Source of the DNA: Macrostomum lignano
Taxonomy: Eukaryota
Length of the DNA: 64,000 nt
NCBI GenBank assembly: GCA_002269645.1
Contig: NIVC01001040.1
Location: 1 to 64,000, forward strand
Reading direction: 5' to 3'
The notes beneath the pieces were generated by a model. That model did no database searches, had not been told where the DNA came from, and saw nothing but the letters and a program-made list of their open reading frames with translations. How positions within the stretch are numbered: position 1 is the stretch's first letter; the number at the start of each line of letters is the position of its first letter. The position numbers and the translations under genes were made by a program. Below, in pieces: positions 4,747 to 31,631 of this stretch.

Positions 4747-5592
4747 CTTAGATGTCAGGCCCAAAATTAGACCACCGATAGTCACCACCAAGCGCATCTC
4801 CCTACAATTTAAGACAATTTTAATGTAAACTTCTACTTTTCTGCATGATTCGGCAGGATCCGTAGGATGAAAACGTTTTTATTGGCTGCCATGCATTATG
4901 CAGCTCGATTTAAGTCAACAGATCTATATGCCATTAATAGTACAGTTTCAAGAGCCAGCTACTCAAGCTACTCACCTCTCAATGTACCCAGCCAGCTCTT
5001 CATGCCCATTGCGCGTCGCAATGTCTACAGCTGTCAGACCGTTGAGGTCCTTCAGGCCAAGCAGGCGTTTTCGTTCGTTATTCGGCTTCTCGGGTCCTTT
5101 GCCGCCATTCTGCTTAGGCGAGTCCGAACTCTCAGCTTCCTTCTTGTCGGTCTCCGTCCACTCAATGTGACTCCACTGCCGCAGCAGATGCAGCAGGTGC
5201 TTGGCGCAGATCCAGCTTCCGGTTTGAGCCGCCTCCATCAGCGGGGTCAGGCCTTGGCTGTTCTGCAGCCACTTAGCATTGAAAGGCATCAGCGCCAGAA
5301 GCCGCACGTTGTCCTGTCGGGCTGCCAAATGCGCAGCCGTGTTGCCCGACTGGTCAATCGCTTTGGTATCGGCGCCAAGTTTAATTAAGTACAAAATGCA
5401 CGTTTCAGCCTGATCTGGAATTCTTGGCGAGTCGGCTGCTAGCATGAGAACGGTACGGTTGGCTTGGTCGGTTGTCGTCACAAGCTGACTGGTTGCCAGC
5501 TGCTGCACCTGGTCAAAGTCACCTTGAATGACCAGCTGTGCGACAGTCTGGAGCGGAGCAGAGGTTGCAGGTGCACGCATTACCAATTGCAT
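4747..5592 (-). CDS. Short ankyrin-repeat gene, copy 1 (exons 5592-4976 and 4801-4747; no copy of the next exon of copy 2 found in the window)
   Basis: Ankyrin motifs NRTVLMLAA, GNTAAHLAA, GLTPLMEAA, GLTAVDIA. GT donor at 4975, AG acceptor at 4802 (phase 2), GTAAGC donor at 4746. Near-identical to 33204-32382. Confidence 0.75.
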
Positions 5593-10690: not shown

Positions 10691-10705
10691 GTTGGGCTTC
10701 TTATT

Positions 10706-11205
10706 CACGAAGCATTAGCAGAGTTTAAGTGCCGTCTTGGCGACCCAGACATTTTTAACGGCTCACTCGTAAAACTCTTCCTACAGCGCTGCAGCTCCGC
10801 GTCCCCGCCCACGAGCTCGACAGAGCGTCCAGCCGCCTGGGCCGACTCCGGTCGGACTGCCTGAGGAGACTCGGTGAGAAATGATGAGGCGACAGTTGGT
10901 GAACTAGTCAAAACCTGCAGTCTGAGCGCAGGCAACCAGCCAAAAGGCACCTGGAACTTCATGGCGCCCGAGGATGCTCATGGCAGAGGGATGGTGACGC
11001 AGAAGGGTGGTGACGCAGAAGGGTGGTGACGCAGAAGGGTGGTGACGCAGAAGGGTGGTGACGCAGAAGGGTGGTGACGCAGAAGGTGGTGACGCAGAAG
11101 GGTGGTGACGCAGAAGGGTGGTGACGCAGAAGGGTGGTGACGCAGAAGGGTGGTGACGCAGAAGGGTGGTGACGCAGAAGGGTGGTGACGCAGAAGGCTG
11201 GTGAC
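10706..11205 (+). repeat. Duplicated cassette (second copy 19094-19765): unique ~270 bp ending in a kinase activation-segment fragment, followed by a 16-bp minisatellite
   Basis: Near-identical sequence at both loci. 10901-10972 reads [24 protein letters not shown]. Repeat unit gcagaagggtggtgac. Confidence 0.9.
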
Positions 11206-11580: not shown

Positions 11581-14500
11581 TGTGACGGTGGACTTTTCTT
11601 TGTGCCACCCCATTTTTGATAAGTCTATAAATAGACCTGGTGCGCGCCAGAGGGCGATACTTGTTTTTCTCTTTGTTGCGGCTCCGTTAGGAGCCTTTGG
11701 ACAATCATCTCATTCTTATTTATTTACAAGAATGCAACATTGGTGACAGCGGTGCGGGCTCGAAGCACCCGTACAACCTGCGTTCCCAAGACGGGGCGCT
11801 CGGAGAAGGCTCCGAAGACAATGCTGAAGAAGCCAGCGGAATCCAAGATTCAGCTACGCTGGAGGGCGCGAATCTGATGAAGACAATGAAGATGCTCCTG
11901 ACGCACCAGAGTCAGCAGCTACAAGAAATGACTCGCGCGCAAGAAAGACAGTCAGCATTCTACCTGGAGCAACTGGCTCGTCAGCAAGCGGAGTTCACGA
12001 AGCTCCTGGCCGAGTCTAAGCCACGACCACAAGCAGCGGAGCCCAAGCTGTTTAAGCTGACGGACTCTGGTGACATCGAGGCATTCCTGATGACCTTCGA
12101 AAGGGCAGCGGCATCGTGTGGATGGCAAAAGTCAGAGTGGACGATTCGGCTGGCACCGCTACTGACGGGCGTTGCGCAGAGCGCATTCCACAGTCTGACG
12201 ACAGCGGCGAGCGCGTACTACGACTTGGCAAAGGCGACCATCTTAGCGAGATACAACATCGGCGAGGAGACCTACCGACAGCGATTTCGGTCTTTGCGGA
12301 AGGCGCCTGAAGAGACCTTCCAGGTGTTCGCAACGAAGCTGGAAGACCTGTTTGTCCGATGGATGACAGCTGGGCTGGACGAGGATCAGAGAGAGGAACT
12401 GATAAGTGGCGACTCCATCGTCAGGCAGAAAGTGCTTCTGGAGCAGTTTACGGACTCTCTGACAAGAGGACTCCAGGTGTGGATGCGAGAGAGAAAACCG
12501 AAGGACATCAAAGAGGCTGCGAAACTGGCCGATGACTACGCAATGGCAAGAAACAGCGACAAGGGCGGCGGAACACCAGGACACCCGAGCCAAGAGACCG
12601 CTGAGGGGGCGACGGCGTCCAATGCTGTGGACAAACAAAGGACGATTCAGAGACCGCAAAGCCTAAAGCCTAAGATTAGCTGCTTCAACTGCGGAGGCCC
12701 CCACAAGAAGTTTCAGTGTACCAACAAGCCCGCCAATGTCCACTTGGCCTCAGAGGAAAGAGCTATGGATGCTGCTTCGGGCAGGTTCATTACCGGACAT
12801 GCGGATGGCAAAGAACTGCGGTTCCTGATGGATACTGGAGCTGATCGAACTACGATTCGGCGTAGCTGTCTGCCTGAAAACATTAATTGGACAGGACATC
12901 ATGCATTATTGCGTTGTTTTGGCGGCGACGTACACCGTCTTCCAATCGCTAAAGTGGAGCTGCACCTAAAGGGCTACAATAGAACCACTGAGGTTTGTGT
13001 GGCTGACTCACTACCCGTAAGCGCGCTGGTTGGACTGGATTTGATTAGCCAGCTCAAGTTGGAGGGTGGAGACGCCCCGAGTACAGTGCTTGGAAGAGAG
13101 ACGCGCGAGGGGGTTCACGGCCAACCCCTCTCAGCCAATGAGAGAGAAGGGGTGGGTGCGCCGCACCGCCCAATGCCCCAGTCAGAGGGGGACGAGAGGC
13201 TTTTCGCGGAGGGCATCGTGGCTAGCGGCCTTAACCAGATCGATCCGGAGCCGGCTGGCAAAAAAAATCAAGAATAACTAGAGCCCAAGCGCGTAAACAA
13301 CGGCAAGAGTACAACAAAACGAGACAAGAAACTGCAATGCGCCCTATAACATTGGATTACGAGGCGGCCCTACAAGACGACAAGGAGTTGCAAGCAGCGG
13401 TACAAACCAACGACTTGGTGAAGGAAAGCCGCGGCAGACTGTTTCGGCATCGAGCAGCTGGAGAGGACCAACTGGTGCTTCCGAAGGCTCTGCGTGCTAC
13501 GGCGCTGTCCCAGGCCCATGAGAGTGCATTCGCTGGCCACTTGGGAACAAGGAAGACTTGCAACGACTGGAACAGCGATTCTGGTGGCCAACGATGACAA
13601 AGGACGTGAAGGACTTCGTAGCAACGTGCGACAAGTGTCAGAAGACGGCTCGAGTCCCAGGCTATCACAAGGTACCACTAGTCCAAGTGCCTGGAGTGGA
13701 GGAGGCCTTCACCAAAGTTATCATCGATATCAGTGGACCGTATACGAGGACTGCGAGTGGTCACCAGTACATCCTGTCGATTATCGATGCGGCTACTCGA
13801 TTCCCCGAAGGAGTCCCGCTGCGAAAGATCGACGCTGAGTCTGTAGCGAAGGCATTGGTGGACTGCTTCGTGAGGACCGGATTCCCGAGGGAGATCCAGA
13901 GCGATAAGGGTACTAACTTTTCATCAGCACTGCTGCAGGCCCTGTACCGGTGTACCGGGGTCGAGGGCATCCAGTCGACGCCGTACCATCCGCAAAGCCA
14001 GGCGTTGGTGGAGAGGTTCCACGGCACTCTCAAGAATATGTTGAGGAGACTACCAGCTCGCGAGAAAAATAAGTGGGACCAGTACCTACCGTTTCTGCTG
14101 TTCGCCATTCGGGAGGTGCCCAACGAAACAACTGGCTTCTCCCCATTCGAACTGCTGTACGGACGCACTGTGCGGGGACCGCTAGATCTACTGTGGCAGA
14201 CCTGGGATGAGCAGCTCTCCGAAGAGAAGAAGGACATCATCTCGTTCGTGCTGGCCCAGAGAGACCGACTGCGGGCTGGCCAGGAAGCGGCACGGAACAG
14301 CGAAGAGCTAGCACGGAAGCGTCAGAAACTCTGGTACGACCGGCAGTCGCGGGAACGAGAGTTGCAGCCCGGAGATCAGGTGCTGCTGCTGCTGCCATCG
14401 TCATCCAAGAAGCTTCACGCTGAATGGCGCGGTCCCTATGAAGTACTGGAGAGGTGCAGCAATGTGAACTACCGGATCCGGATGGGCCCTGCGACAAACA

Positions 14501-16341
14501 CGTTTCATGTCAACCTGCTTAAGAAGTACAATTCACGGGAGACGGTTTTGATGCAGCTTCCAGCGGCAGCTACGAGTGCTCCTGAGTTGTCCGAACATCT
14601 GACACCGGCCGAGAGAGATCGTCTCCTGCAGCTGGTGCAGGACTTCGCGGGCGTCTTCAGCGAGATCCCGGGCAGGACTGACCTAGTGGAGCACCGTATC
14701 CGGACGACATCTGACCGCGTAGTGCGCATCCGGCCGCGACGGGAGCCGCAGGCGCATCAGCAGGTGCTCCAAGAGGAGATTCAACGCATGCTGGACCTCG
14801 GGGTGATCGAACCATCTGACAGTGACTACTGCTCCCCGGTCTGTCTGGTGGCCAAGAAAGACAGCTCAGTCCGGTTCACTGTCAACTTCAAGGCGCTGAA
14901 TGAGCTTGTGGCCTTCGACTCGTATCCGATGAAGAACATCGAGAACCTACTGGAGCGGGTCGCCAAGGCCAAGTTCATATCTAAGCTAGACTGCTGCAAG
15001 GGCTACTGGCAAATTCCACTGTACGAGGATTCAAAGCGATTGACGGCTTTCGCGGCCTGCGGCAAGCTGTATCAATTTACTGTGATGCCCATGGGCTTAA
15101 ACTGCAGCAGCGCGACGTACCAAAGGCTCATGGACAAGCTGTTCCAAGGGCTGGACAACGCGGACTCCTACATCGATGACATCGCCGTGTTTAGCGCGAC
15201 TTTCGAGCAGCACGTCGAGGACCTGAGAGAAGTGTTCGGTCGCCTTAAGGCTGCCGGTCTAACGGTGCAGCCCCGAAAGTGCTACCTGGGCGGCAACTCT
15301 GCTGACTACCTGGGTTTCAAGCTCGGCGGAGGCGAGATCGGTACAAGCGAGGACCGAGTGCCGACAATCACGGCGCTGGCTCAGCCCCGGACCAAGGCTC
15401 AGCTGCGATCTGTGCTCGGAGTGCTCAACCACTACCGTCGGTTCGTGCCCGATTACTCAGAAAAGGTGGCGGCCTGACGGACCTCACGAAGAAGTCGGCA
15501 CCCGATGACCTGACGGCGGCCTGGGGAGAGCAGCAGACACGAGCCTTCGAGGCAGTGAAATCTCTGCTGGCGAGCGAGCCGATGCTGCGCGCGCCGGACT
15601 ACAGTCGGCAGTTTATCTTGGAGACTGACAGCTCGGAGACTGGGATCGGCGCGGTGCTAACGCAAGAACTCGAGGACGGCATCCATCCCGTGCTCTTCGT
15701 ATCTCGGCGGTTGACTTCGGCGGAGTGGAGCTACGCGACGATCGAGAAGAAGTGCCTCGCCGTGCGCTGGGCGGTCAAGAAGCTGCGGCACTACCTGCTA
15801 GGCCGCCGGTTCGTCATCAAGTCCGACCATAAGCCGCTGCAGTACCTGCAGATGGACCACGCCAACCCACGACTCCAGCGGTGGGCCTTCTATCTGTCCG
15901 GCTATGACTACGAGATCCAGTACCAGCCAGGCGAAAGCAACACGGTGGCCGATGGTCTCAGCAGGATCTGGGCTAGTGACCGACCAAGTGATTTAGTGAC
16001 AGACCAAGTGATTTAGTGACTGACCAAGTGATTTAGAGACTGACTGAGCGATTTAACTTTTATTCAAGTCATTAGTGGCCAAGTTTGGATTGTTTTTTTT
16101 TGTAAGACTTATCCGAACTTTGCGTGACCCTGCGATTGATTTTGGCTTGCGATTTTTCCGGCTTCGATCTTTTAGTGGAGGGTGTGACGGTGGACTTTTC
16201 TTTGTGCCACCCCATTTTTGATAAGTCTATAAATAGACCTGGTGCGCGCCAGAGGGCGATACTTGTTTTTCTCTTTGTTGCGGCTCAGTTAGGAGCCTTT
16301 AGACAATCATCTTATTCTTATTTATTTACAAGAATGCAACA
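11581..16341 (+). mobile_element. Ty3/gypsy LTR retrotransposon of Gmr1 type (gag-PR-IN-RT-RH), three frameshifts
   Basis: 159-bp TG...CA LTRs at 11581-11739 and 16183-16341 (3 differences). PBS TGGTGACAGCGGTG at 11741. Purine tract before the 3' LTR. TSD GTACG/GTGCG. SCAN-like gag, CCHC knuckle CFNCGGPHKKFQC, protease MDTGAD, integrase HHCC and core before RT (YIDD), RNase H (ETDSS). Confidence 0.93.
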
Positions 16342-16825
16342 GTGCGATACGAAAAAACCATGCAGGCCATCTTTCGCCTAAACATGGACGACCTATTGAT
16401 TGTCGCATGCAAATATAGGGGGCGGGTGGAATTTTTGAATAAAGCTACTCTCCCGCTATCTCATTTAGAACTCCGCTTATCGTACAGCGGTGCTGCTCCA
16501 CATCGACACTGCCCTGTCATTTAACACTGCCCTTTCATTAAACGCTGCCCTCCGTCTCTATATTACAAGTGCGTCAAAGTTGAACTAACCCATACTGATC
16601 TTGAAGATAAAGAAAAGAATCGGCCTCAGTCCATTTAAACAAATTTCTCTGCACAGGGAGAGCTCAGAGATTTCAGTCCGTGACAGCGGCACTTTTGCTG
16701 CTGCTGCTGAGCTGGCAGGCAAATTCGCTTGAAGAAGAGCAAAGCACTCAGTTTGAAGCCGTGTGGAACAGCTGCGGCAGACAGCAGATCGGCAGAGAAG
16801 CGCTGCTAGGAGAAGCAGTGTAGCC

Positions 16826-19800
16826 ATGGCAACACAGATGGAGCGGAAGCTGAGAGCGGCGCTGGAGGCTGGAGACAGCGAGGAGCTGCAGCGACTGTGC
16901 GGTGAGGTCGGCAGCAACATCGAGCTGGATGTGGGCGGGTTCGACAAGCAAGACTATCCCTTTGAAGAGGTTCGCCGAATGCCGCTGGCCCATCACGTGG
17001 CCTGCAAGCCGGTGAGCTCGTCGTGCCTGGAGCTGCTGATTGACAGATTCGGAACCGGCTGTCTGACATATGGAAATGGTAGGCTTATTCGTGAGACTCC
17101 AGTGCACTTGGCTGCCCAGCATCAGGACGAATCTTGGATGAAGCTGGTTAAAGAGAAGGGAGGCAGAGGCTGCTTGAGAATTGCCAATGAAGATGGAAAG
17201 ACAGTCGCTCACTTTGCCGCTATGAACAGAAAAAGCAACTCTTGTCTGAAGTGGCTGGTGAAGGAGCTCGGCAGCGACTGTCTCACAGTTCCTGACAAAT
17301 ACGGTAACACGGCCGTCCATTTGTCCGCTGAGCATCAGGGCATCGAGTCGCTGGAGTGGATCAAGAGACAGATCGGAACTGACTGCTTTCGGCTGAACAG
17401 AGGGTTCTGGAAGAGAACGGCATTTCACTTTGCTGCTCAGAAGTCTGACAATTCAAATCTGAAGTGGCTGGTGAAGGAGGTCGGCAGCGACTGTCTCACA
17501 GTTCCTGACAAAGACGGTAACACGGCCGTCCATTTGGCTGCTTGGCATCAGGGCATCGAGTCGCTGGAGTGGATCAAGAGACAGATCGGAACTGACTGCT
17601 TTCGGCTGAAGACAAAGAGTAATAGAACAGCATTTCAATTTGCTGCTGAGAAGTCTGACAATTCAAAACTGAAGTGGCTGGTGAAGGAGCTCGGCAGCGA
17701 CTGTCTCACAGTTCCTGACGAATACGGTAACACGGCCGTCCATTTGGCCGCTCAGCATCAGGGCATCGAGTCGCTGGAGTGGATCAAGAGACAGATCGGA
17801 GCTGACTGCTTTCGGCTGAAGGGATTGTTGGATAGAACAGCATTTCAATTTGCTGCTGAGAAGTCTGACAATTCAAATCTGAAGTGGCTGGTGAAGGAGC
17901 TCGGCAGCGACTGTCTCACAGTTCCTGACTCTAGAGGTGACACGGCCGTCCATTTGGCGGCTCAGCATCAGGGCATCGAGTCGCTGGAGTGGATCAAGAG
18001 ACAGATCGGAACTGACTGCTTTCGGCTGAAAGGAAGGCTCGATAGAACAGCATTTCACTTTGCTGCTAAAAAGTCTGACAATTCAAATCTGAAGTGGCTG
18101 GTGAAGGAGCTCGGCAACGACTGTCTCACAGTTCCTGACAGTTACGGTAACACGGCCGTCCATTTGGCCGCTAAGCATCAGGGCATCGAGTCGCTGGAGT
18201 GGATCAAGAGACAGATCGGAGCTGACTGCTTTCGGCTGAAGGGATGGTTGGATAAAACGGCATTTCACTTTGCTGCTGAGAAGTCTGACAATTCAAATCT
18301 GAAGTGGCTGGTGAAGGAGCTCGGCAGCCACTGTCTCACAGTTCCTGACGAATACGGTAACACGGCCGTCCATTTGGCCGCTCGGCATCAGCCAGTCGAC
18401 TCTCTGCAGTTCATTTTTGACCAAATCGGAGCCGAAATGTTCAGCTTGAAGAACAACAGGGGCGAAACACCGGCTGATGTTGTTGCGAGTCGGTGGTGCT
18501 ACGCAGACCAGTCAGAAAAGCGGGACTGGATTTCTTCCACGCAGCGGCGGCTCGAAGCCTCTCGGCCTCCCGCTGGCAGCTCAGCGCCGACTGCCGCCTC
18601 AGCTGGGTGAGTCCTGACTGAGAGCTGCTGCCTGACACTGAAAATACTGAAAATATTGTTTGGCGAAAATTCATTGCGCTTTGATGATCGGCGCCCTGAA
18701 ATTCTCAGCAGCGCCGCAGTCAAGCGAGGGCGTCATGAATCTGTCAGTGCAGCTCCTCATGGCGCCTCCAATCTCCCCATGGCGCCCCCAACCTCCCCAA
18801 GGCCACCCCAACTTCCCCATGGCGCCTCTAATCTCCACAAAGCGCCCCCAAACTTCCCACAGCTCGATTCCAGGAGTTTTTTAACACAAAGCATCAGCGA
18901 GTTCAAGTGCCATCAAAGTCTCCGAAGTTTCAAACTCTCCGATTTTAGTCTGAATGTACTTGGTGTGATGTTCAAAATATTGGCACTTGAATGATTTGAG
19001 AGCCTCCAATCTCTTCGTGGCGCCGCAATCTCCCGATCGCGCCCCAATGTCCACATAGCGCCACCCAAAGCTCAATCTGCAAGGCTTTTTATACACGAAG
19101 CATTAGCAGAGTTTAAGTGCCGCCTTGGCGACCCAGACATGTTTAACGGGCTCACTCGTAAAACTCTTCCTACAGCGCTGCAGCTCCGCGTCCCCGCCCA
19201 CGAGCTCGACAGAGCCTCCAGCCGCCTGGGCCGACTCCGGTCGGACTGCCTGAGGAGACTCGGTGAGAAATGATGAGGCGACAGTTGGTGATGGTGAACT
19301 CGTCAAAACCTGCAGTCTGAGCGCAGGCAACCAGCCAAAAGGAACCTGGCACTTCATGGCGCCCGAGGATGCTCATGGCAGAGGGATGGTGACGCAGAAG
19401 GGTGGTGACGCAGAAGGGTGGTGACGCAGAAGGGTGGTGACGCAGAAGGGTGGTGACGCAGAAGGGTGGTGACGCAGAAGGGTGGTGATGCAGAAGGGTG
19501 GTGACGCAGAAGGGTGGTGACGCAGAAGGGTGGTGACGCAGAAGGGCGGTGACGCAGAAGGGTGGTGACGCAGAAGGGTGGTGACGCAGAAGGTTGGTGA
19601 CGCAGAAGGGTGGTGACGCAGAAGGGTGGTGACGCAGGAGGGTGGTGACGCAGAAGGGCGGTGACGATGAAGGGTGGTGACGCAGAAGGGTGGTGACGCA
19701 GAAGGCTGGTGACGCAGAAGGGTGGTGACGCAGAAGGGTGGTGACGCAGAAGGCTGGTGACGCAGTAGACTGAGTGACTCCAAAGTACTCAGAAAGCCCC

Positions 19801-20848
19801 AAGCAACACAAAATTCATCGAATTCCTTCATTTCATGTTTCAGCGCCAAGAAGCAGCTGGACCCCAGCTTCACCGACTGGGACTTCATCCTGCAGGACAA
19901 CAAGAAGCAGCTCATCGGCCGTGGCGGATTCGGTGAGGTGTACAAGGCCCTCACAGACCGCAACCAGACGGTGGCTGTCAAGGTGCTGCCCCTGAGCGGC
20001 ACCGGCCAATCGGGGAAGCTGCAGAAAGCCGTCGAGATGGAGAAGCGGGGAGTTGAGATCATCAAGCGACTCTCGCATCCCAACATTCTGCAGTTCCTCA
20101 AGTGCGAGCAGAAGTCGGACGGGCTGTACATCTTCACCGAGCTGGTCTCGGGTCACAGCCTCTTTGAGCTGATGCAGCGTCAGAACAAGCCGTTCAAGGA
20201 GTCCGGGGTCAGGGACTTCTCCAGACAGGTGCGTCTCTGAGTTCTCTGGCATTTTCTGGTAAGGGTGGGATCAGGGTGGAATCAGTGTGGGATCAGGGTG
20301 GGATCAGTGTGGAATCAGTGTGGGATGCACTTTTTGACTACTCAAAACTGCTCCACCTGCAGATCTGCTCAGGCCTAAACTTCCTGCACTGCCAGCCGGA
20401 GGGCGCCATCTTGCACCGTGATATCAAGAGCTCTAATATTATGCTCACCAACGAGGGCGTCATCAAGCTGATCGACTTCGGCCTCGCTAAGGAGATCGTC
20501 GGCACCTGCGGCCTGAGCACAGGCGTCGATCCCAAAGGCACCCCCTACTTCATGGCGCCCGAGCTGTTCATGGGCGAGGGCGATTCGATTCCGTATTCAG
20601 CCAAGACCGACGTGTGGGCCTTTGGCTGCACCGTGTATGAGCTGACGGCCATGGAGCCTCCTGACGCGAACGTTCCGCAAATCAGGATCGGCATCGTGAG
20701 GTGCGGAGGGCGGGCGATGCCTCGGATTGCGGACGGGTTCTCAGCCGGCATGAAGGACTTCTACCTCAGGTGCGTAGACTATGACCCGAGGAAGCGAGCG
20801 GACACCACGGAGCTGCTGCGGCACAGCTTCCTGAGTGCCTCATCGTGA
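16826..20848 (+). CDS. Ankyrin-repeat / STE(MAP3K)-like Ser/Thr kinase fusion, 883 aa (exons 16826-18606, 19844-20228, 20363-20848)
   Basis: GCCATGG start. Phase-2 GG|GTGAGT donor at 18607 matches the phase-2 tttcag|C acceptor at 19843. Phase-0 intron 20229-20362. Kinase motifs [40 protein letters not shown]. Spliced length 2652 nt with no stop. Confidence 0.85.
17260..18400 (+). repeat. Coding tandem repeat of 210 bp (70 aa, two ankyrin units), about 5.5 copies
   Basis: gttcctgac recurs at a 210-nt period (first unit 213). Confidence 0.95.
19385..19765. repeat. 16-bp minisatellite in intron 1 of the ankyrin-kinase gene
   Basis: Unit gcagaagggtggtgac, same as 10990-11205. Confidence 0.95.
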
Positions 20849-20914
20849 CTGCGAGAGCGATGGGCTGTGAGGGAGCGGAGCGGCTCTTGGAGCGGGCGGT
20901 TTTGATTGCTGACG

Positions 20915-21105
20915 TTGTCTGCTTTTGTTTATCCGATTGACCTTTTTGTTTATCCGATTCCTCTTTTTGTTTATTCGATTTCCCTTTTTGTTTATCCGAT
21001 TGACCTTTTTGTTTATTCGATTGCCCTTTTTGTTTATCTGATTGCCCTTTTTGTTTATCCGATTGACCTTTTTGTTTATCTGATTGCCCTTTATGTTTAT
21101 CCGGC
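20915..21105. repeat. 21-bp minisatellite (ccctttttgtttatccgattg)
   Basis: Direct tandem array downstream of the kinase stop. Confidence 0.9.
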
Positions 21106-21599
21106 TGCTTTGTTTGTTCGAACTGCTCATTCTGCTCATTCAGATTTTGAATTTTGAATTATCGTTTTGTCTATCGATCACCCTGCTGCTTCCCGATGCC
21201 CGGATCAGTTATCCAATCACAGTTTCGCTTATTCGGCTGCGATTCGGAATTCAAATTTTATTTATTTGACTGCCGGGTTTGTTTTACCGGTTGCTCCTTT
21301 CAATTAATGAGACATTTTTGTGCTGACTCGAGTGCCCTTTCAGTTTCAAGCTGATCAATGTTGATTTTGAAACTCTGGCACAAAGCCAATCACAATTTCC
21401 CCAATCTGCTCAGACTGCTCAATACCTACTCCAGATTTTGTGTTGCCGAGAATTTTTCACATTTTTCAGCCACCGGTTTGGCGCTTTTTCCGGCACTGAT
21501 TTTTTTATTTATTTTTGGACTGACTTTTTATTAGCAACTGTTGGAGCAGGAAGTCCAGCGCTTACTCAAGACTTCTCAGTTAAATATACAGGCACCGCT

Positions 21600-21917
21600 T
21601 GGCTTGCCGTGACCCGCTGTGTCCTGACTTGCCGTGACCCGCTGTGTCCTGACTTGCCGTGACCCGCTGTGTCCTGACTTGCCGTGACCCGCTGTGTCCT
21701 GACTTGCCGTGACCCGCTGTGTCCTGACTTTCCGTGACCCGCTGTGTCCTGACTTGCCGTGACCCGCTGTGTCCTGACTTGCCGTGACCCGCTGTGTCCT
21801 GACTTGGCGTGACCCGCTGTGTCCTAACTTGGCGTGACCCGCTGTGTCCTGACTTGCCGTGACCCGCTGTGTCCTGACTTGGCGTGACCCGCTGTGTCCT
21901 GACTTGCCGTGACCCGC
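21600..21917. repeat. 25-bp minisatellite, about 13 copies (gccgtgacccgctgtgtcctgactt); further units at 22324-22364 and 25405-25417
   Basis: Direct tandem array. Confidence 0.95.
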
Positions 21918-22731
21918 TCATAACGCCTTTGCAGCCTACTCAATTCTGTACAGATTATCTGCTTTATAAAGCTTCTAAACTGGAGGATATAAAGTATTGT
22001 CTGCTACTTTATAGAGACTAGGAGGCAATGATTGAAATAACAGAAACTTTATTCATTTTGACTGCAATGAAATATTGCGTATTGACGTTACTTTACTGTA
22101 CGCCCGCCGCTCCTACATGTAAATATAGCGCCAAACTGTGCTTCATGTTAAAGAAAACAAAATTTCGAGCAACCTGGCGAAAAAATTATCTTTCAAGTGC
22201 AACCAGTCCGGAGTTAATAGCATTTAAAGTTTAGCTGCAATGCAAACAAGCGGGCCTTCAAATAATTTTGCAATATTTACGAGTGTTGCGTCCTGATACA
22301 ACGGTAACTTCTAGTGGTCCTTGGACCCGCTGTGTCCTGACTTGCCGTGACCCGCTGTGTCCTGAGTAGTATATACGGTACAAAATCACCAGCAAACCCT
22401 TCTCATAATTCAAACGATTTAACCCTTTATCAGTGTGAAATGACTCGTTTTCCCTTCATTATCGCTCGTCTTTACTTCGCTCAACTCGTTTCGTTCATCC
22501 TCGCTTCATTTCGGTCAATCTCCTCATTTCACACTTACAACGATTAATTCCCATTGAATTATGAGAATACGCTCTCGTCGTTCGCTTTGGTTTGCTAGTG
22601 ATTTTGTACCGTACCCAACTCATCCAACTCTTCTAACTCTTCTAACACTTCCAACTCTCCCCAACACACACAAACACTCTATAACCCGCTGCCGCGCCGC
22701 AGGCGCGAAGGGTCTTTTTCTGTTACTAAAA

Positions 22732-23052
22732 ATGAACCGAGTTTACACCTTTTCTGTTAGTGATACTTTTGAGACCGTTGCTAAAAATGCAGAGATAATA
22801 AAACAGCATATTTTGAATGGAATAATTGATGAAGTTTATTTAAAATATGATGATAAGCACGATCTAAAACTTTATCCGTTAGAGTTGGATGGGATGTATG
22901 ATCTAGAACAAGAGGGTGAGTTAATATTTCAACTTGGAGATTATTTAAATTCTGATGATTGGGAGACTCGTTCAGATGATTCCAACTCAACAAATAGCTC
23001 ATATGAAACTAGCGATTCGGATAATTATTATGAAAAATATTTTAAAAAATGA
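22732..23052 (+). CDS. Polinton-derivative ORF, 106 aa acidic hypothetical protein
   Basis: ATG sits at the inner edge of the left TIR; MNRVYTFSVSDTFETVAKN...YYEKYFKK. Confidence 0.6.
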   Translation: MNRVYTFSVSDTFETVAKNAEIIKQHILNGIIDEVYLKYDDKHDLKLYPLELDGMYDLEQEGELIFQLGDYLNSDDWETRSDDSNSTNSSYETSDSDNYYEKYFKK

Positions 23053-23216
23053 AGGTAAATTATTCGTACATCGGAAACGTACCGATTGATGAACTTAATG
23101 AAAATTTAAGTCTAATTACTGTTGAACAAATGTCAATAATAATATTAGTAACAATAATAGTAATAATATTGTTTTTGTTTGTTATAAAAAATTTACTACC
23201 ATGTCAACTGCCTTAA
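23049..23216 (+). CDS. Polinton-derivative small membrane protein, 55 aa (not in ORF track)
   Basis: ATGA overlap with the previous stop. MKVNYSYIGNVPIDELNENLSLITVEQMSIIILVTIIVIILFLFVIKNLLPCQLP contains one hydrophobic stretch. Confidence 0.5.
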   Translation: MKVNYSYIGNVPIDELNENLSLITVEQMSIIILVTIIVIILFLFVIKNLLPCQLP

Positions 23217-23230
23217 GTAACTGTTCGAAC

Positions 23231-23563
23231 TTAGTTCGCAGACATTATTTGGTTCTCATAAAAAGAACCCAATATTTCTTCACCATCCTTATCAGCAATT
23301 ATATAGGTTGTAGGATTTTCAGCCTTTTCTATTAAACGCTTCATTTCATATTCTGCCCTTATATTATTTGCTAATGCGTTTATTTCCTGTTCTTGTATTT
23401 CTCTTTCTCTTTGTCTTTCTCTCTGTCTTTGTCTTGCTCTTTGGCGACGTTGTTGTCTTTGGCGCTGTTCAATTTGTTCAATCTGTCTTTGTAATCGATT
23501 GAACTGTTGGCGCTCATTTGCAAGCAGTTGTCGAATCTGATCTGGGGTCAATCTTTGTTCCAT
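23231..23563 (-). CDS. Chimeric ORF: R/Q-rich coiled coil fused to a Polinton integrase-like C-terminal tail
   Basis: C-terminus NPTTYIIADKDGEEILGSFYENQI resembles the P.TY...D..GE.I.G.FYE.EL tail recalled for Maverick integrases. Confidence 0.55.
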   Translation of the reverse strand: MEQRLTPDQIRQLLANERQQFNRLQRQIEQIEQRQRQQRRQRARQRQRERQREREIQEQEINALANNIRAEYEMKRLIEKAENPTTYIIADKDGEEILGSFYENQIMSAN

Positions 23564-23647
23564 TTTATAGAATATAATTTATACAATATTTGAATTATTG
23601 GTTTTTTAATTTTAGGTTTTAGACGTCCTGACCCTCCCCACAGGAGC

Positions 23648-24604
23648 TTATTCGAGTTCCGCTTTAGGTAACAGTAGTCCACTACCCATAACATTTGCAT
23701 TTAAGAAAATTCCAGATCCGGCTTTGGGTCTCATTTCAAGATATAATCCGCTTCCGTCGTGTTTTTCAATGATGTTAAAATCTTTACCCAATTTATTAAA
23801 AATCTTCTGAACTGCTGGCCTAAAATTAGCTCTAATATTGTCAAAAAATCCTTTAGCTTTCTCGCCCGTTTTTTCTAGAGTTTGTCCAAATTCATGTAAT
23901 TTATCTGCTACAACCCCACTTCCTTGGGTTGATCCTTGTAGGAGTAAACCCTTCCCAGCTGCTAACCTAGCTTCTGCATTTCTTTTTTGTTCTGCTGTTG
24001 CTGAACTACTATTAATTGTATCTATAAGTTTTTGTTTGAATTGAGCATCCTGTGTTATTTGCTGTCTTTGAAATTCAGCATCTCGTTTAGTTTTTTCATC
24101 CGCAGCTTTTTTATCGTTTACTGCTTTTGTGATTCCTGCTGCGCCACCTGCTATTCCACCAGCTGCTCCTATTCCTGCAAAAATTATTGGTAATAAAGTT
24201 GCAAGTGGAAGTATACCTCCTTGTTTTGCTTTTAATTCTGCTAACTGTTTTCGGTTATCATGAATTCTTTTGCCTGCTAAACCGGCTGCTCCAGCCGCTC
24301 CGAGGCCTAAAAGAATTGGTAAAATGGGTAACAACCCACCGTCCTTTTTAGTGTGAGTTTCTATTAAAAATTTTACATCGGAGTCTGTCAGCCTATAATT
24401 TCTACCATGATTCTTAAAGGATATTGGCCTTCCTCCTTGTGCATATTTTGCAGCAAGTTTAAATGTATCAATATCATAGTCAAGTTTTTTACTTAAACGA
24501 TCCAATCTTTTTAACATTGTATGGCTTTGTTTGTTATAATCTAAACCTAGAGTGTCTACGATTTCTCCTATAAAAGATAGCCGACTGTCATTAACTGAGT
24601 CCAT
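23648..24604 (-). CDS. Polinton virion-associated polyprotein-like ORF, 318 aa, with two adenovirus protein X-like motifs
   Basis: KDGGLLPILPILLGLGAAGAAG and KQGGILPLATLLPIIFAGIGAAGGIAGG; several G(S/K)G-hydrophobic motifs near the C-terminus. Confidence 0.7.
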   Translation of the reverse strand: MDSVNDSRLSFIGEIVDTLGLDYNKQSHTMLKRLDRLSKKLDYDIDTFKLAAKYAQGGRPISFKNHGRNYRLTDSDVKFLIETHTKKDGGLLPILPILLGLGAAGAAGLAGKRIHDNRKQLAELKAKQGGILPLATLLPIIFAGIGAAGGIAGGAAGITKAVNDKKAADEKTKRDAEFQRQQITQDAQFKQKLIDTINSSSATAEQKRNAEARLAAGKGLLLQGSTQGSGVVADKLHEFGQTLEKTGEKAKGFFDNIRANFRPAVQKIFNKLGKDFNIIEKHDGSGLYLEMRPKAGSGIFLNANVMGSGLLLPKAELE

Positions 24605-24614
24605 TTTTATATTG

Positions 24615-25025
24615 CTAAAATTTCTTTAATCCTTTTCCACTTTTAATTGTAGTTAACATTTTATTAAAATCCTGAATATCCTTATTACTTATTGGTGTGC
24701 TTTTTGTGGGGGTTTCTGTTGGTTGTGCGGCTTGAGTTGCTTCCTGCGCTAGTTTCAAATCTTTTATTGCTTTTATTTGTGAGAGGGTGTCGTTAAATTC
24801 TCTCAATTTCTTTAGTTCTTCTACTGCCCTCGCTGCTTCGATTCCGCCCTTTACAGCGTTTGTTATAGAACCTGCTGCGGAGCCTGCTTGCCCTATAAGA
24901 CCCATATTGTCTTTAACAAAATTTGCTGCTGTTCCAACCACATCAAAAAGACCCTCACCTCGGTATTCAACTGGGTCTCCTACCTGAAATTCATTCAGAT
25001 TTTGCACATGTGTAACGTGTGTCAT
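24615..25025 (-). CDS. Polinton-derivative ORF, 136 aa, putative protease-matured amphipathic protein
   Basis: ATG just inside the right TIR. YRGEG-LFDVVGTAANFVK amphipathic segment; ends KSGKGLKKF. Confidence 0.6.
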   Translation of the reverse strand: MTHVTHVQNLNEFQVGDPVEYRGEGLFDVVGTAANFVKDNMGLIGQAGSAAGSITNAVKGGIEAARAVEELKKLREFNDTLSQIKAIKDLKLAQEATQAAQPTETPTKSTPISNKDIQDFNKMLTTIKSGKGLKKF

Positions 25026-26536
25026 TTTTTGTTCTATTTTTAGTAACAGAAAAAGACCCTTCGCGCCTGCGGCGCGGCAGCGGGTTATAGAGTGTTTGTG
25101 TGTGTTGGGGAGAGTTGGAAGTGTTAGAAGAGTTAGAAGAGTTGGATGAGTTGGGTACGGTACAAAATCACCAGCAAACCAAAGCGAACGACGAGAGCGT
25201 ATTCTCATAATTCAATGGGAATTAATCGTTGTAAGTGTGAAATGAGGAGATTGACCGAAATGAAGCGAGGATGAACGAAACGAGTTGAGCGAAGTAAAGA
25301 CGAGCGATAATGAAGGGAAAACGAGTCATTTCACACTGATAAAGGGTTAAATCGTTTGAATTATGAGAAGGGTTTGCTGGTGATTTTGTACCGTATATAC
25401 TACTGTCCTGACTTGCCAAGTCAGGGCCTGGGATGAGATGTCTCGGCGATTCTAGTCGTCTGGGCCGACAAGTTATCGATTGCAGTCGGTTTGGTCCTGA
25501 GCTGAACTTCGGGCTCCATTCTGGTGCTTAAGTTGACATCTCCTTTCTCATCAACTCGATTTTTATTTCACAGTATACTCATCAAAATCGAAAGGTCGCC
25601 ATCACAGAAGATTCCGTCTGTGCATGGTCGCCACTTTGGAGAGTGCAGGTAAAGTCTCTCAATCTTGCGAGTGACGCAACGTAGCTACGCCACGGTCGGC
25701 AGCCTTGAGTTGAGGAATGAAGTGGGGGGAGAGGTGTGCGAGGGTTGGACGGATTTAAGCTACCCCGATCAGTTTTCTCGCATCTTTTATTTCAGAATAG
25801 TCCAAGAGAAATTGCTCACTGGCGCATAGAGTGGCGACTTTTCAATGTTGCTGAGTATATATTACCAATAGTAAACTATCATTACACACTACTGTTCAGA
25901 GTAGTTAAACCAGCCAAGTTAATGTTTTACAGTGACTGTAAAATCAACATGTTTGCGATCAAAACGTAGTGCCGTTATCTTGCAAAGCAGTGCCCCGCTA
26001 TTCAACAAGTAGCTATATATATAGTTAGCTTAAAGAAAACATTACGATCGCTTCAATTTCTTCTGATAAGCGCTCCTGCAAGGCTGGTTCGTAGGTTTCC
26101 GAGTTAAATAGTGGCAACGTTTTTATTATTTAAAAATGTATAAATTTCTTCTCGTGAAATTTCTGCCGACATTGTGAGTTATTGATAGGATAAATGGGGC
26201 TCTGGGAGGACGTCAGGTCAAAGCAATGGAGGAACAAGCGAAAAATTTACAATTTAAAAATTGCTAAACAAGAGTTATTCAAACATCCGGGAGGTACCAA
26301 GGAGGTATATAGTTATATTGTTTTGATATTGTTTCTGGGTTTGCAAAAGTAATAATGAAGCAATTCACTCATGGACTACTAAAGTAGAAGGATGCGACAC
26401 TCAAAATCGATGTAGAATGTTTTGATGACCACTTTTGCCGAAAAATACACTGACGAGATAGGAAGTTTTCATTTTTTAGCACAAAAATTGTTATTGCTTT
26501 CGATAGGAGGCAGACCCAGAGTTCATCTTTTGATAT

Positions 26537-29500
26537 TGTAGTGACTGTGCATCGGGCCTAGGTGTTGTAACTAACTAACTTTGAGGCTAGAATTGTTCAA
26601 TTACCTTATATGCATCGTGCGTTCAATCATGGTATCGTTGTTTCGATTGCGTAACACTGTTTTCAACGTGCACATGAGTATAAATATATTGAGCGAGACT
26701 CAAGTGTCTCCAACTGAATTGAATTTAATCAATCAACTAGAACACAACAAATGGCGACGAGCGGACTCCCGTACCCAGCGGAGTTTCAACCAGTACCAGG
26801 CGAACCTCCTGTGCCATGGGCAAGGTGGATAAAGTCATTTGAGAACTTCCTGGTAGCTGGAGCTCTCGAAGAGGCATCAGAGAGTCGGAAGAAGGCGATC
26901 CTCCTGCATCTGCTTGGTGAGGAAGGACGCCGCCGAGCTGCAAACGTCGATGCAAGCAAGTCGCTTCAGGAGACCAAAAAGGCACTGAAGGCGATTTTCA
27001 GCTCGTCGAGAAGCGTCATAGCAGAGCGCTTCGCCTTTCGGCAGCGAGCCCAGCACGACGGCGAGAGCATCGGAGACTACGTGATGGCCCTGAGAGAACT
27101 GGCAACAAACTGCAAATTTGACACCTTTCACGACGAAATGATTCGAGACCAACTTGTGGAGAAAACCTGCGTACCTCGCATTAGGGAAAGACTCCTGATG
27201 GAGGAGGACGATCTGACGCTAGATGACGCCATCAAGAAGGCTGAGCGAATCGAAGCAGCCATCAAAGATGCCAAGCAGGTCAGCGGCCCAGAGCTCCACG
27301 TGAAGGCGCTGAGCAAGAAGCCGAAGCCAGCTGCTCGCCATGAGAAGACCGCAGCAGCAGGTCCAAAGTGCACTCGATGCGGAGGCAACCACGGACACAA
27401 GGGCGAATGCAAGGCGATGGGCCAGAAATGCAGACGATGCGGCAAGACGAACCATTTCGCGAAAATGTGCCGCATGAAAGCGGTCTCTGCGATCGACACC
27501 AAAGAGCCTGCAGAGTCCAGTCTGACGGTCCTGGCCGTGAACAACAAGAGCACAGACAGCTTATTCTGCGAATGCCGTCTGGGCGGACAGCTGATTCGAC
27601 TGCAAATCGACTGCGGTGCTGCCGTTTCGTTGCTCAACATGGAGACGTTCAAGAAGTCCTTCGCTAGGCACCCGCTGCTTCCGACGAGCACAAAACTGGA
27701 GGCATACGGCGGATCTGCGATCAAGACCATCGGCAAGGTCGAGCTTCCAGTGACGTTCAACGGCATCAGGACAGAAGCCACATTCTACGTCGCCGACAAA
27801 GGAGCGAACATCCTGGGCCGCGACCTGTTTCAGGCCCTCGGATTCAAAATCTTCCAAGGTGACAACAGAGTGATGAGCATCAGCGAGACTACGATCGAGC
27901 GCGACTTCCCCGGAATCTTCGACGGTCTGGGCCGGTCCAAGAGCTTCATTCACCGGACAAAGATCGACGCCTCGGTCAAGCCAGTGTCTCAGCCAATGCG
28001 GAAGCTGCCGATCGGCCTGAAGGACGAAGTGACGTCAGAGATCAGCCGGATGGAGCAACAGGGCATCATTGAGAAGGTCGACGCGTCCGAGTGGGTTAGC
28101 AACGTTGTCGTGACGCGCAAGAAGGAGTCCAACAAGGTTCGTCTCTGCGTGGATCTGCGGCAGGTCAACAAGGCGGTGATCGCGGACCGCTATCCGGTAC
28201 CGTCAATCGAGGACCTATCGGCCAGCATCAACGGCTCGAAGTGCTTCAGCAAGCTGGACCTGCGTCAAGGCTACCAGCAGATTCCGCTGCATCCAGACTC
28301 TCGAGGACTGACGTGCTTCATCACCGATGCCGGCCTGTACCAGTTCACCGTGGTGCCATTCGGGCTATCTAGCTCCGGAGCTGCCTTCCAGCGAGCCCTG
28401 CAGACGGTGCTTCGAGGAGCTCCTGGCGCCATCAACATCGTGGACGACATCCTGGTGCACGGCAAGGACGAGACTGAGCACGACAAGAACCTCCGAGAAG
28501 TCCTAGGGCGGATTCATCGCGAAGGCTTCACACTCAATCGAGAGAAGTGCAAATTCCGGCAGGCGAGCGTGGATTTCTTCGGATTGGTCATCTCTGCAGA
28601 CGGCATCAAACCGACCAAGTGCAACGTCGACGCAATTCTAAGAATTCCTGAGCCATCAACGGTCGCGCAAATTCAATCGTTTCTCGGAGCAGTGAACTTT
28701 TTGCACAAGTTCATACCGCATTACTCAGCAATTGCCGAGCCTCTGAGACAACTGCTCAAAAAGGACGCGGACTGGCACTGGGGTGAGCGGGAACGTACAG
28801 CCTTCCGTACACTCAAGTCAGCCGTAACCAGCAGCCCAGTGTTAGCTCATTTTGACTGCCAAGCTGAGACGTACGTCACCTGCGATGCAAGTCTAGACGG
28901 ACTGGGGGCAGTGCTCAGCCAAGTACAAAACGAAAAAGAGGTGCCAATCGCGTTCGCATCGAGAGCACTCAGCCCAGCGGAAAAGCGATACTCAGCCGGA
29001 GAGCGAGAAGCCCTGGCCTGTGTATGGAGCATCGAACGCTGGCACTACTATCTATACGGCAGACGAGTAACGCTGCGCACCGACCACAAGGCCCTGACAA
29101 CTCTGCTCGACTCGAAAGGCATGGGGCACAGGCCTCTTCGCATTCATCGATGGGTCGAGAGACTTCGCGGCTACGACGTCCGGTTTGAGCACATCCCTGG
29201 CGCTGACAACAAGTGCGCGGACATGCTGTCCAGATGGGCCACGACGGAGCGCGTTCCAGCCGAGGAGACCGACGAGGAGGGCTACGTCTACGCAGTCGTC
29301 GACTCGAAGACAACGCTGACGGCAGACGCACTGGCAACGGCGACCAAGGAGGACGAAGTGCTGCAGGCGGTTTTGCAGTACATCTCGGGCGGCTGGCCAT
29401 CGAAGGTGGACAGCTCTCTAAAGCCGTACTTCAACGTCCGGGACGAGCTGTTCTGCTGGAACAACGGTCAGTGCCTCGGTCGTGGTGAACGCGCGATCAT

Positions 29501-30860: not shown

Positions 30861-31631
30861 GATATGTTGTGCCTTTCTTATTGCTCTATCGATATTCATA
30901 AAGCTTTTCGTTCAGAAAATAAGAATTATATGTTAAGTTTTAATTCTACGTACACTTCCTGTACCTAAAAATCATTAAAGTGGATGGCACAGCTCCAATC
31001 TTTGATTTTATGAATCTATTTCATCATCTCTGTTACACATTTTGCTACACAGTCGGCTAAGAATGACAATAGACTCATAAAACCAATGAGCTGAGCTGTG
31101 CCATTTTAATGGTTTTTAGGCACAAAAAATATACAATTTTACGTAGAATAAAAAAGTATGAAAATTTATGAATACCAATAGAGCTATAAGAAAGGCACAG
31201 CACATCAAAAAGATGAACATTAGGTCTGCCTCCTATCGATAAAGAAAGCCATAACAATTTGTGTGCTGCAAAAATGAAAACTTCCTATCCCCAGTGTATT
31301 TTTCTGCTAAAAGTGGCCTTCAAAACATTTTCCATAGATTTCGGGTCACAATCGGGTGTCGCGTCCTGTATATGTTGCTTTAGTTGTCCTTGCAATTAAC
31401 CATGCTAACAAAGGTGAAAAAAATTATTCAAAGCAAAGATAATTAAGTGTCGATTCTTGCACAGGAAGCTGAGTCACTCTGCGCCACACGGCAGTTTTGA
31501 TCAGTGTGTGTACCTTTGCAGCTGCTTTGAACATTCAAAAGTAGCTGCGACCTTCGTACCTGAAATTCATCAAGTGCTCAATGATTTTCGTGCAGCAGAA
31601 CTGGACTCATCAATTTTCAATGTTAACTCAC

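Follow-up and report, generated by a model that had tools for sequence, protein, structure and literature searches.

Hypervariable ankyrin di-repeats joined to a STE-group kinase in the flatworm Macrostomum lignano

Why does a tandem array of 210-bp units keep most of its codons nearly identical, when a few codons differ from unit to unit at two or three nucleotides? This question is raised by a gene on contig NIVC01001040.1 of the free-living flatworm Macrostomum lignano (assembly GCA_002269645.1), whose positions 1 to 64,000, read on the forward strand and called the window in the following, were analysed. The gene encodes an ankyrin domain attached to a protein kinase (ANK-kinase). A first-pass annotation, made from the letters alone, had proposed diversifying selection on a binding surface against a homogenised scaffold, as expected for a variable pathogen receptor wired to a kinase. 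Comparisons of the repeat units within the window and across paralogs support this proposal as far as a homogenised, kinase-attached scaffold whose canonical binding surface has been diversified by selection.

Repeat units and their variable codons

Tandem Repeats Finder reported the array at 17245-18391 with a period of 210, 5.4 copies and 91% matches. The array lies completely within an open frame on the + strand (16763-18610). Aligned by codons it starts at 17240, and each unit consists of 70 codons (71 in U1, which has one extra loop codon) encoding two ankyrin repeats, ANK-A and ANK-B:

17240-17452, + strand: unit U1, di-repeat of 71 codons
17453-17662, + strand: unit U2, di-repeat of 70 codons
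17663-17872, + strand: unit U3, di-repeat of 70 codons
17873-18082, + strand: unit U4, di-repeat of 70 codons
18083-18292, + strand: unit U5, di-repeat of 70 codons
18293-18502, + strand: unit U6, first half a repeat-like ANK-A, second half a diverged C-terminal capping repeat

The amino-acid identity between units U1 to U5 averages 85.0% (range 81-90%) and amounts to 94.2% if the hot spots of variation are excluded. Numbered as in designed ankyrin repeat proteins (DARPins), the hot spots are:

17297-17308 (U1, KYGN), 17510-17521 (U2, KDGN), 17720-17731 (U3, EYGN), 17930-17941 (U4, SRGD), 18140-18151 (U5, SYGN) and 18350-18361 (U6, EYGN), + strand: ANK-A hypervariable beta-turn, positions 2, 3 and 5, from codon and DARPin alignments
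17330-17332 (U1, E), 17543-17545 (U2, W), 17753-17755 (U3, Q), 17963-17965 (U4, Q), 18173-18175 (U5, K) and 18383-18385 (U6, R), + strand: ANK-A helix-1 position 13, hypervariable
17396-17416 (U1, NRGFWKR, with the extra codon), 17609-17626 (U2, KTKSNR), 17819-17836 (U3, KGLLDR), 18029-18046 (U4, KGRLDR) and 18239-18256 (U5, KGWLDK), + strand: ANK-B hypervariable loop, positions 33 and 1-5
17438-17440 (U1, Q), 17648-17650 (U2, E), 17858-17860 (U3, E), 18068-18070 (U4, K) and 18278-18280 (U5, E), + strand: ANK-B helix-1 position 13, hypervariable

All residues that had been quoted for the D-x-x-G-x-T turn (KY/N, KD/N, EY/N, SR/D, SY/N, EY/N) are present in the sequence. The residue after HLAA is E, W, Q, Q, K and R as stated (U1 itself reads HLSA), and the second loop (NRGFWK, KTKSN, KGLLD, KGRLD, KGWLD) and the H/Q and Q/E/K exchanges of FxFAAx were likewise read correctly. 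The ANK-B loop is the entropy maximum of the unit (columns 55 and 56 with 2.85 and 2.59 bits), and a weaker variation was seen at ANK-B positions 9/10 (H/Q and F/I; two and three codons upstream of the AA pair).

Twelve codons per unit, corresponding to the DARPin randomised positions 2, 3, 5, 13, 14 and 33 in both repeats, had been fixed as an a priori test set before the variation was viewed. In the window, 18 of the 36 nucleotide sites within these codons are variable, compared to 15 of 174 (9%) elsewhere (Fisher p = 4.8e-8). Among U1 to U5/6, 20 codon columns vary, and in ten the variation affects two or three nucleotides, while random placement would give 4.5 ± 1.5 codons with at least two variable nucleotides (p = 7.5e-4). 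Nei-Gojobori estimates for U1 to U5 resulted in an overall ratio of nonsynonymous to synonymous substitution rates (dN/dS) of 1.46; dN was 0.40 at the a priori codons, and dS and dN were both 0.043 in the remaining ones. The dN value of this framework decreased to 0.024 once three further turn or helix-1 codons were removed. The excess of multi-hit codons and the dN/dS above 1 bear out the earlier description of multi-nucleotide, mostly non-synonymous changes at a few positions of otherwise near-identical units.

In DARPins the beta-turn and first-helix positions are the ligand contacts that have been randomised. A HMMER comparison of three units with PDB sequences gave a direct alignment to DARPin 6ar6_B, in which the randomised residues x2, x3, x5 and x13 are occupied by K, D and N of DKDGNT and by W of HLAAWH, and KTKSNRT...FAAEK covers x33, D1, x2, x3, G4, x5 ... 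x13, x14. By this alignment the supposed DARPin-like placement held for positions 2, 3, 5 and 13; positions 14 and 33, which are conserved here, do not follow it. The AlphaFold2 model of the domain (24 relatives; mean pLDDT 91.3, pTM 0.80) consists of regular paired helices and was matched by Foldseek to NOMPC, ankyrin-1, AnkB, TRPA1, latrotoxin and DARPins (E = 1e-22 to 1e-18). In every unit of the model the variable residues are situated in the loop before helix 1 and in or just after its last turn; ANK-A position 13 lies in the final turn itself. According to a survey of 7,407 ankyrin repeats, positions 33, 1, 3, 11 and 12 (with TPLH as positions 4-7), which are the variable sites of our units in that numbering, form a concave surface enriched in protein contacts, and 84% of the surveyed ankyrin complexes bind via the concave face (PMC8415598). 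The weak H/Q variation of our units fits this surface, since the partly exposed His of TPLH belongs to it (PMC8415598). Together, the DARPin alignment and the structural survey support the assignment of the variable sites to the binding face, the hot spots being predicted to line the concave ligand-binding groove.

Variation among paralogs, haplotypes and gene models

Is the pattern peculiar to one array, or is it a property of the gene family? Thirty-nine units (38 distinct DNA sequences) were obtained from ten loci, the window locus and nine fetched ones (L002-L010). An intact ankyrin open reading frame (ORF) was found at every one of them, with 2 to 13 full di-repeat units per gene and an internal unit identity of 83-92% in the paralogs. 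Over the 39 units, the amino-acid entropy is about zero in most of the unit and peaks at columns 20, 21, 23 and 31, which are ANK-A positions 2, 3, 5 and 13; a second group of peaks occupies columns 54-59 and 67, corresponding to ANK-B positions 1-5 and 13. Seven of the eight columns reaching at least 1.5 bits are a priori positions (hypergeometric p = 4e-6), the eighth being a Cys specific to the first unit. Positions 14 (H/K) and 33 (P/K) are conserved throughout this set.

Because recombining units violate the assumptions of tree-based selection tests, pairwise Nei-Gojobori estimates, tree-free minimum-spanning counts and codon bootstraps were chosen. At the a priori codons the nonsynonymous diversity (piN) was 0.32 per site, as opposed to a synonymous diversity (piS) of 0.077 in the framework, a ratio of 4.2 (codon bootstrap 95% confidence interval (CI) 2.2-7.2). 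Compared to their own synonymous sites, the same codons gave a piN/piS of 1.73 (CI 1.19-2.69), whereas the framework ratio was 0.60. The tree-free minimum-change count yielded 60 nonsynonymous and 8 synonymous changes at the a priori codons versus 62 and 31 elsewhere (Fisher p = 0.0016). By codon positions 1/2/3, diversity was 0.48/0.39/0.25 in the hot-spot codons and 0.038/0.024/0.065 in the framework, which has the usual maximum at the third position. Thus, the codon-level check on units and paralogs that had been recommended for the array gave values above 1 at the binding codons, both against their own and against the framework synonymous sites.

Similar results were obtained for the non-repeated N- and C-terminal repeats of the ten paralogs, where the comparison was made position by position between paralogs and is free of any ambiguity in repeat alignment. 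There, too, the variability resides in the beta-turn loops and in the helix-1 end or cap helix, with a piN of 0.45-0.50 at the hot columns and a piS of 0.08-0.11 elsewhere (N-terminal repeats: 0.45 versus 0.11, with entropy peaks at two loops).

Could such a distribution arise without positive selection? In recent tandem duplicates, purifying selection for folding might hold the framework constant and leave the exposed positions to drift unconstrained. Positions 2, 3, 5, 13 and 14 are the least conserved ones in ankyrin repeats generally (PMC8415598), and the framework dN/dS is below 1 (0.40-0.60), both of which suit this explanation. However, given a uniform mutation rate along the unit, unconstrained sites cannot outpace the synonymous sites of the same young duplicates, and neutral drift is therefore contradicted by the 4.2-fold excess of a priori piN over framework piS. 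Within genes, hot-spot codons differ at 36% of their nucleotides and the framework at 2.4%, i.e., the hot spots are 15-fold more variable. Hot-spot codons are, in addition, less diverse at their third position than at the first two, and multi-nucleotide codon changes are in excess. We regard a neutral origin as improbable.

Diversifying selection on the hot spots goes along with homogenisation of the scaffold. At 177 framework nucleotides, units of the same gene exhibited a mean of 4.3 differences and units of different genes 8.0 (permutation p = 5e-4), which agrees with the homogenised scaffold of the first-pass annotation. Hot-spot cassettes are shared across genes in recombined form, SRGD..Q being found with KGDDD..K, KGRLD..K, KGWLDK..E and KGDGE..K; yet 37 of the 39 unit signatures are unique. 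The recurrent SR cassette (17930-17935 in the window) reads TCTAGA in all ten units carrying it, while one other unit encodes Ser by AGT. As TCT differs from the majority codon AAA at all three nucleotides, this cassette was apparently propagated by copying rather than by repeated origin. Unequal crossing-over and gene conversion between the 210-bp units would produce this overall pattern, selection presumably keeping the hot-spot differences.

A dedicated mutational mechanism, either targeted hypermutation, templated conversion from silent cassettes or somatic rearrangement like that of the lamprey VLR receptors, whose expressed gene is assembled from flanking cassettes, might also write diversity of this kind. 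The variation is extremely localised, the cassettes SRGD..Q and KGDDD..K are common to several genes, frameshifted arrays that might serve as donors exist near an ANK-caspase locus (L012, see below), and a retroelement bearing a reverse transcriptase is located only 0.8 kb upstream. Against it stand two independent haplotypes, taken from germline or bulk assemblies, that are virtually identical across the array, contrary to what high-rate or somatic change would produce, and ordinary unequal crossing-over and gene conversion account for the shared cassettes. We give this mechanism very little credence. The substitution spectrum contradicts it too: the adenine-specific mutagenesis of diversity-generating retroelements was rejected, as positions with A, C, G or T in the majority all vary and every type of substitution occurs. 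No template repeat of such an element was seen, and the nearby reverse transcriptase belongs to a long terminal repeat (LTR) retroelement. The unit substitutions did not disclose a signature like that of repeat-induced point mutation (RIP) either.

The two haplotypes deserve a closer description. Window positions 13113-19601 (6.5 kb) are 99.78% identical to contig NIVC01000558.1 (L001) of assembly GCA_002269645.1. The ankyrin exons differ at two nucleotides, a silent one at 17395 and one at 17399, which replaces Arg by Gly in the U1 loop of ANK-B. The sequences are also distinguished by large insertions, 14.4 kb in intron 2 of L001 as well as 3.5 kb and 4.3 kb in the window, and thus they are not copies of one sequence. 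They represent different haplotypes, subgenome copies or assemblies. The L001 insertion (12777-27213 of that contig) corresponds to window positions 19601-19805 in intron 2, where the window lacks it; the annotated gene there spans 18 kb.

This agreement also bears on the question of whether the array is an assembly or annotation artefact, resulting from the collapse or chimeric joining of many paralogs during long-read assembly. Annotated proteins often fall short of the units present in the DNA, and proteins of the older assembly contain frameshifted stretches. P0001, annotated at the window locus, is 72 residues short of the array encoded by L001, and P0004 contains only four of the 13 units of its gene. 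P0012, a UniRef entry from the older assembly, resembles the window gene minus exactly three units at a KY|GD junction; it may reflect either a genuine short allele or a collapsed assembly. On the other hand, the window and the independently deposited contig have the same 5.4 units with only the two exon differences, and the frames are intact across ten loci, so that an artefactual array is hardly conceivable. The missing unit of P0001 was also considered as an allelic deletion; this was rejected, since the L001 DNA comprises the full array, and the shortening is a gene-model artefact. The 13-unit paralog behind P0004 (L002, 5932-9459, on the contig of L001 and about 80 kb off) possesses an intact ankyrin ORF of 1176 aa. 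Paralogs are often clustered on the same contigs. As M. lignano gene models collapse arrays, the size and the diversity of the family are underestimated in annotations.

The kinase, a caspase-bearing sister subfamily and the possible function

What does the variable domain serve? The gene hosting the array is intact and consists of four exons on the + strand with canonical splice sites, which upon joining give an uninterrupted translation of 912 aa:

16826-18606, + strand: exon 1, entire ankyrin domain (~15 repeats) and Ser/Pro/Ala-rich linker, donor GT at 18607 (ORF, Pfam, tblastn of P0001, AlphaFold2)
16826-17239, + strand: N-terminal cap and three non-repeated ankyrin repeats within exon 1 (secondary structure of the model, alignment of ten paralogs)
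19176-19262, + strand: exon 2, Pro/Arg-rich linker (tblastn, splice sites read, model in frame)
19844-20228, + strand: exon 3, kinase N-lobe with the glycine loop GRGGFGEV and the lysine of VAVK
20363-20848, + strand: exon 4, kinase C-lobe and stop codon (PDB matches to STE20-like kinases and MAP3K5)

The protein thus begins with the ankyrin domain, continues with a low-complexity linker of about 90 residues and ends with a Ser/Thr kinase. Splicing of the ankyrin exon to the kinase exons in this model confirms that the array is wired to a kinase. Pfam recognised the ankyrin exon by Ank_2 (157.8 bits at a cut-off of 27.3, E = 1e-46), Ank_4 (149.3) and Ank (112.8). All catalytic motifs of the kinase including APE were found. 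Its best PDB matches are SLK, STK25, MST4 and MAP3K5 (E = 1e-36 to 1e-34), and the nearest proteins outside Macrostomum are plant MAP3Ks of the MEKK/NPK1/ANP1 type with 33-37% identity. On these similarities the kinase is assigned to the STE group (STE11 MAP3K / STE20-like), and its subfamily within STE is left at that level. The 912-aa protein contains neither a signal peptide nor a membrane segment, which suggests an intracellular sensor rather than a surface receptor. Database matches to the ankyrin exon are M. lignano proteins annotated as 'protein kinase domain-containing' (ANK+Pkinase) with 72-94% identity; outside this species they are no closer than about 33%. A prokaryotic origin of the window was dismissed at the outset, in view of its introns, its retroelements and the flatworm matches. 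The ANK-kinase gene is regarded as a member of a large M. lignano-specific family. In a scan of family members against NCBIfam, every match remained far under the cut-offs.

A sister subfamily, for which the loci L011 and L012 were fetched, possesses its own near-identical di-repeat of 71 aa with the consensus SCLKWLVNECGTDCLSVRDQQGNTPVHLAAWKQGADSMQFFKSVLGSDCFHQPG-xx-QRTAIH-x-AA-x-NEATN. Its hot spots are ANK-B positions 2, 3, 10 and 13, with a piN of 0.535 versus a framework piS of 0.035. The domain following the sister array is a kinase in P0009 and a caspase in P0022, P0024 and P0027. At the ANK-caspase locus L012 (7051-9254, P0024), the array extends over two overlapping frames with frameshifted repeat copies upstream, which are either pseudogenised units or assembly indels.

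We think it probable that the array serves an intracellular ANK-kinase as its recognition domain, homogenised by recombination and diversified by selection, and that the ligand would switch the effector. Unequal crossing-over and gene conversion would keep the 210-bp units nearly identical, and the same recombination would alter the number of units and reassort half-units, both in a given paralog and among those of a cluster. Amino-acid differences at about ten codons per unit, lining the concave groove, would be favoured and preserved by selection, so that the long binding surface differs from gene to gene while the scaffold stays constant. Binding of the ligand might then switch on the STE11/STE20-like kinase, or the caspase in the sister subfamily, for instance by relief of autoinhibition or by clustering, and the output would be stress, immune or cell-death signalling. 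An intracellular, ligand-activated sensor is the most economical model because the protein has no secretion signal, the array and a MAP3K-like kinase are joined directly, and the sister family is fused to a caspase.

The evolutionary layer of this model, a selection-diversified recognition surface on a recombination-homogenised scaffold, has largely been shown by the comparisons above. Beyond it, the surface would be expected to bind variable ligands, either non-self or fast-evolving, and the binding would be expected to regulate the kinase. The pathogen receptor of the first-pass annotation is one candidate role; the ligands may be microbial, viral, transposon-derived, allogeneic or fast-evolving self proteins. 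Several observations weigh against a sensor diversified by selection. No NACHT, NB-ARC, death-fold, TIR or other recognised immune signalling module was matched by Pfam in the window protein and nine relatives. Taken alone, the tree-free nonsynonymous excess at the a priori codons over their own synonymous sites is not significant (p = 0.12); moreover, the units are non-independent samples and the bootstrap was over codons only. The two haplotypes of this locus revealed no allelic hypervariability, rapid turnover or somatic change, and their unit number is identical. The concave-face assignment was made from a sequence alignment, the predicted secondary structure and a surface classification taken from the literature. 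Finally, literature searches disclosed nothing specific on this family or on immune gene expansions in Macrostomum, and no expression, ligand or phenotype data.

An alternative is that the surface has indeed been diversified, but for endogenous ligands, the arrays being adaptors that target substrates or scaffolds for a MAP3K-like kinase. The drivers might then be internal conflict, involving transposons, reproductive proteins or selfish elements of the toxin-antidote kind, or sub-functionalisation after duplication, and not pathogens. Ankyrin domains often function as adaptors, and the genome duplication of M. lignano is recent. The lack of a recognised immune domain in the protein, the clustering of many paralogs on the same contigs and a neighbourhood very rich in retroelements and insertion polymorphisms are in accordance with this idea. 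However, a hypervariable array coupled to a caspase and a range of 2-13 copies suit surveillance or cell death better than housekeeping targeting, and the sole well-studied precedent of such a repeat regime is fungal non-self recognition (PMC4986451). We regard endogenous targeting as rather unlikely. More specifically, the family may form a germline-encoded, recombination-diversified repertoire of NOD-less intracellular innate immune or allorecognition sensors, an animal counterpart of the fungal NOD-like receptors (NLRs) with highly internally conserved (HiC) repeats; this we consider less likely than not.

The surroundings of the gene within the window are unusually rich in ankyrin genes and minisatellites. 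Upstream, a gypsy-like LTR retroelement (11697-16016), which is also present in L001, comprises a gag/protease ORF (11697-13277), an ORF at 13558-15477 and an RNase H region (15555-16016). In the second of these, the integrase region precedes the reverse transcriptase, an unusual order reminiscent of Gmr1-like elements. Still further upstream, 10694-11205 is about 95% identical to 19083-19601 and duplicates exon 2 together with a 16-bp minisatellite (GCAGAAGGGTGGTGAC), probably all that is left there of a further family member. Downstream, a 3.04-kb element of low GC content (22365-25404, ~36-41%) is bordered by perfect terminal inverted repeats of 369 nt (22365-22733 and 25036-25404). Of its three ORFs, two have their start within the repeats and therefore possess 56 N-terminal residues in common. 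The element is absent from L001. Apart from a weak Pfam match to Adeno_PX, its ORFs had no match in Pfam, and none in PHROGs. It is possibly a recent mobile or virus-derived insertion. A second LTR retroelement with an intact gag-pol ORF of 1312 aa (26751-30689) is an insertion polymorphism, as the surrounding 26543-30861 is absent from L001.

On the - strand, 42347-47405 harbours two adjacent long intronless ORFs, one of 769 aa (45096-47405) with diverged ankyrin di-repeats and one of 893 aa (42347-45028) with ankyrin and ion-transport (TRP-like) domains, which could together make up a single TRP-type channel gene. The repeats of both show 22-25% identity to the ANK-kinase di-repeat and are not internally conserved. 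Near-identical copies of a small ankyrin ORF (MQLVM.APAT...) lie about 27 kb apart on the - strand (4972-5592 and 32548-33204). Further ORFs of the window encode ankyrin proteins (466-987, 1228-1755 and 31628-32122) and a Mab-21-like protein (2502-3782).

Comparison with known ankyrin systems

How does the ANK-kinase relate to described proteins? The vertebrate ankyrin-repeat kinases RIPK4 and ANKK1 were the first named matches to the ankyrin query outside Macrostomum, and they also combine a Ser/Thr kinase with an ankyrin domain. In these proteins, however, the kinase is N-terminal, while the ankyrin domain comes first in the flatworm protein. The similarity is restricted to the repeats (26-31% identity), those of RIPK4 are not internally conserved, and the flatworm kinase is nearest to the STE group and not to RIP kinases.

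ANK-caspases have been described as characteristic of parasitic flatworms; for M. lignano only a caspase with a kinase prodomain was mentioned, and repeat hypervariability was not reported (Genome Biol Evol 2024, PMC11463336). An ankyrin pro-domain joined to a caspase, combined with the sister HiC di-repeat, is precisely what P0022, P0024 and P0027 of M. lignano possess, and these proteins extend the picture of flatworm ANK-caspases (PMC11463336). The window gene differs from them in carrying a kinase.

With DARPin libraries the array has in common a constant consensus framework and diversity at beta-turn positions 2, 3 and 5 and helix-1 position 13. Differences are that the flatworm array is natural, that positions 14 and 33 are conserved, that ANK-B turn positions 1 and 4 also vary, and that variation at positions 9/10 is weak or found in subfamily 2. 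While DARPins contain two to three internal repeats of 33 aa, the flatworm repeats have 35 aa, alternate between two types and number up to 13 di-repeats (26 repeats).

The closest parallel is provided by the ANK, TPR and WD repeats of fungal NLRs of the HiC type (Podospora het-e/het-d/nwd), which are defined by a repeat identity of at least 85% over at least 100 aa (PMC4986451). They exhibit repeat-number polymorphism, concerted evolution and combinatorial effector domains (Dyrka et al. 2014, PMC4986451), and in the ANK repeats the positively selected positions lie on the inner helix and the beta-hairpin/loop, i.e., on the concave face (PMC4986451). The flatworm genes resemble them in a within-gene identity of about 85% (85.0% in the window, right at the threshold), in a number of units that varies between paralogs, in the reshuffling of units, in the few hypervariable positions, in concave-face hot spots with signs of positive selection, and in effectors that are swapped between similar repeat domains. 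They differ in that the proteins lack NACHT/NB-ARC, the repeats are N-terminal with the kinase or caspase attached directly, the unit is composed of two distinct alternating repeats (35+35 aa), and the host is an animal. Allelic repeat-number polymorphism is present in Podospora, whereas the two haplotypes of the window locus are equal in unit number. As the defining NOD domain is absent, the ANK-kinase is not an NLR.

How concerted evolution and diversifying selection maintain near-identical repeats with hypervariable binding residues is known from fungal NLRs. Such repeats are rare in animals, where only 0.8% of metazoan ANK/TPR/WD repeats are of the HiC kind (PMC4986451). Here they occur in a genetically tractable flatworm, with the variable surface joined straight to a kinase or caspase and no nucleotide-binding switch in between. 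If this surface recognises non-self, the family would represent a new architecture of animal innate sensors, an immune receptor class undescribed in animals. It would then also be a natural parallel to DARPin engineering, revealing the positions that are randomised in nature and the tolerance of arrays with up to 26 repeats. The M. lignano genes are thus a case of repeat diversification of the fungal-NLR HiC type, found in an animal, without NOD, on kinase and caspase effectors.

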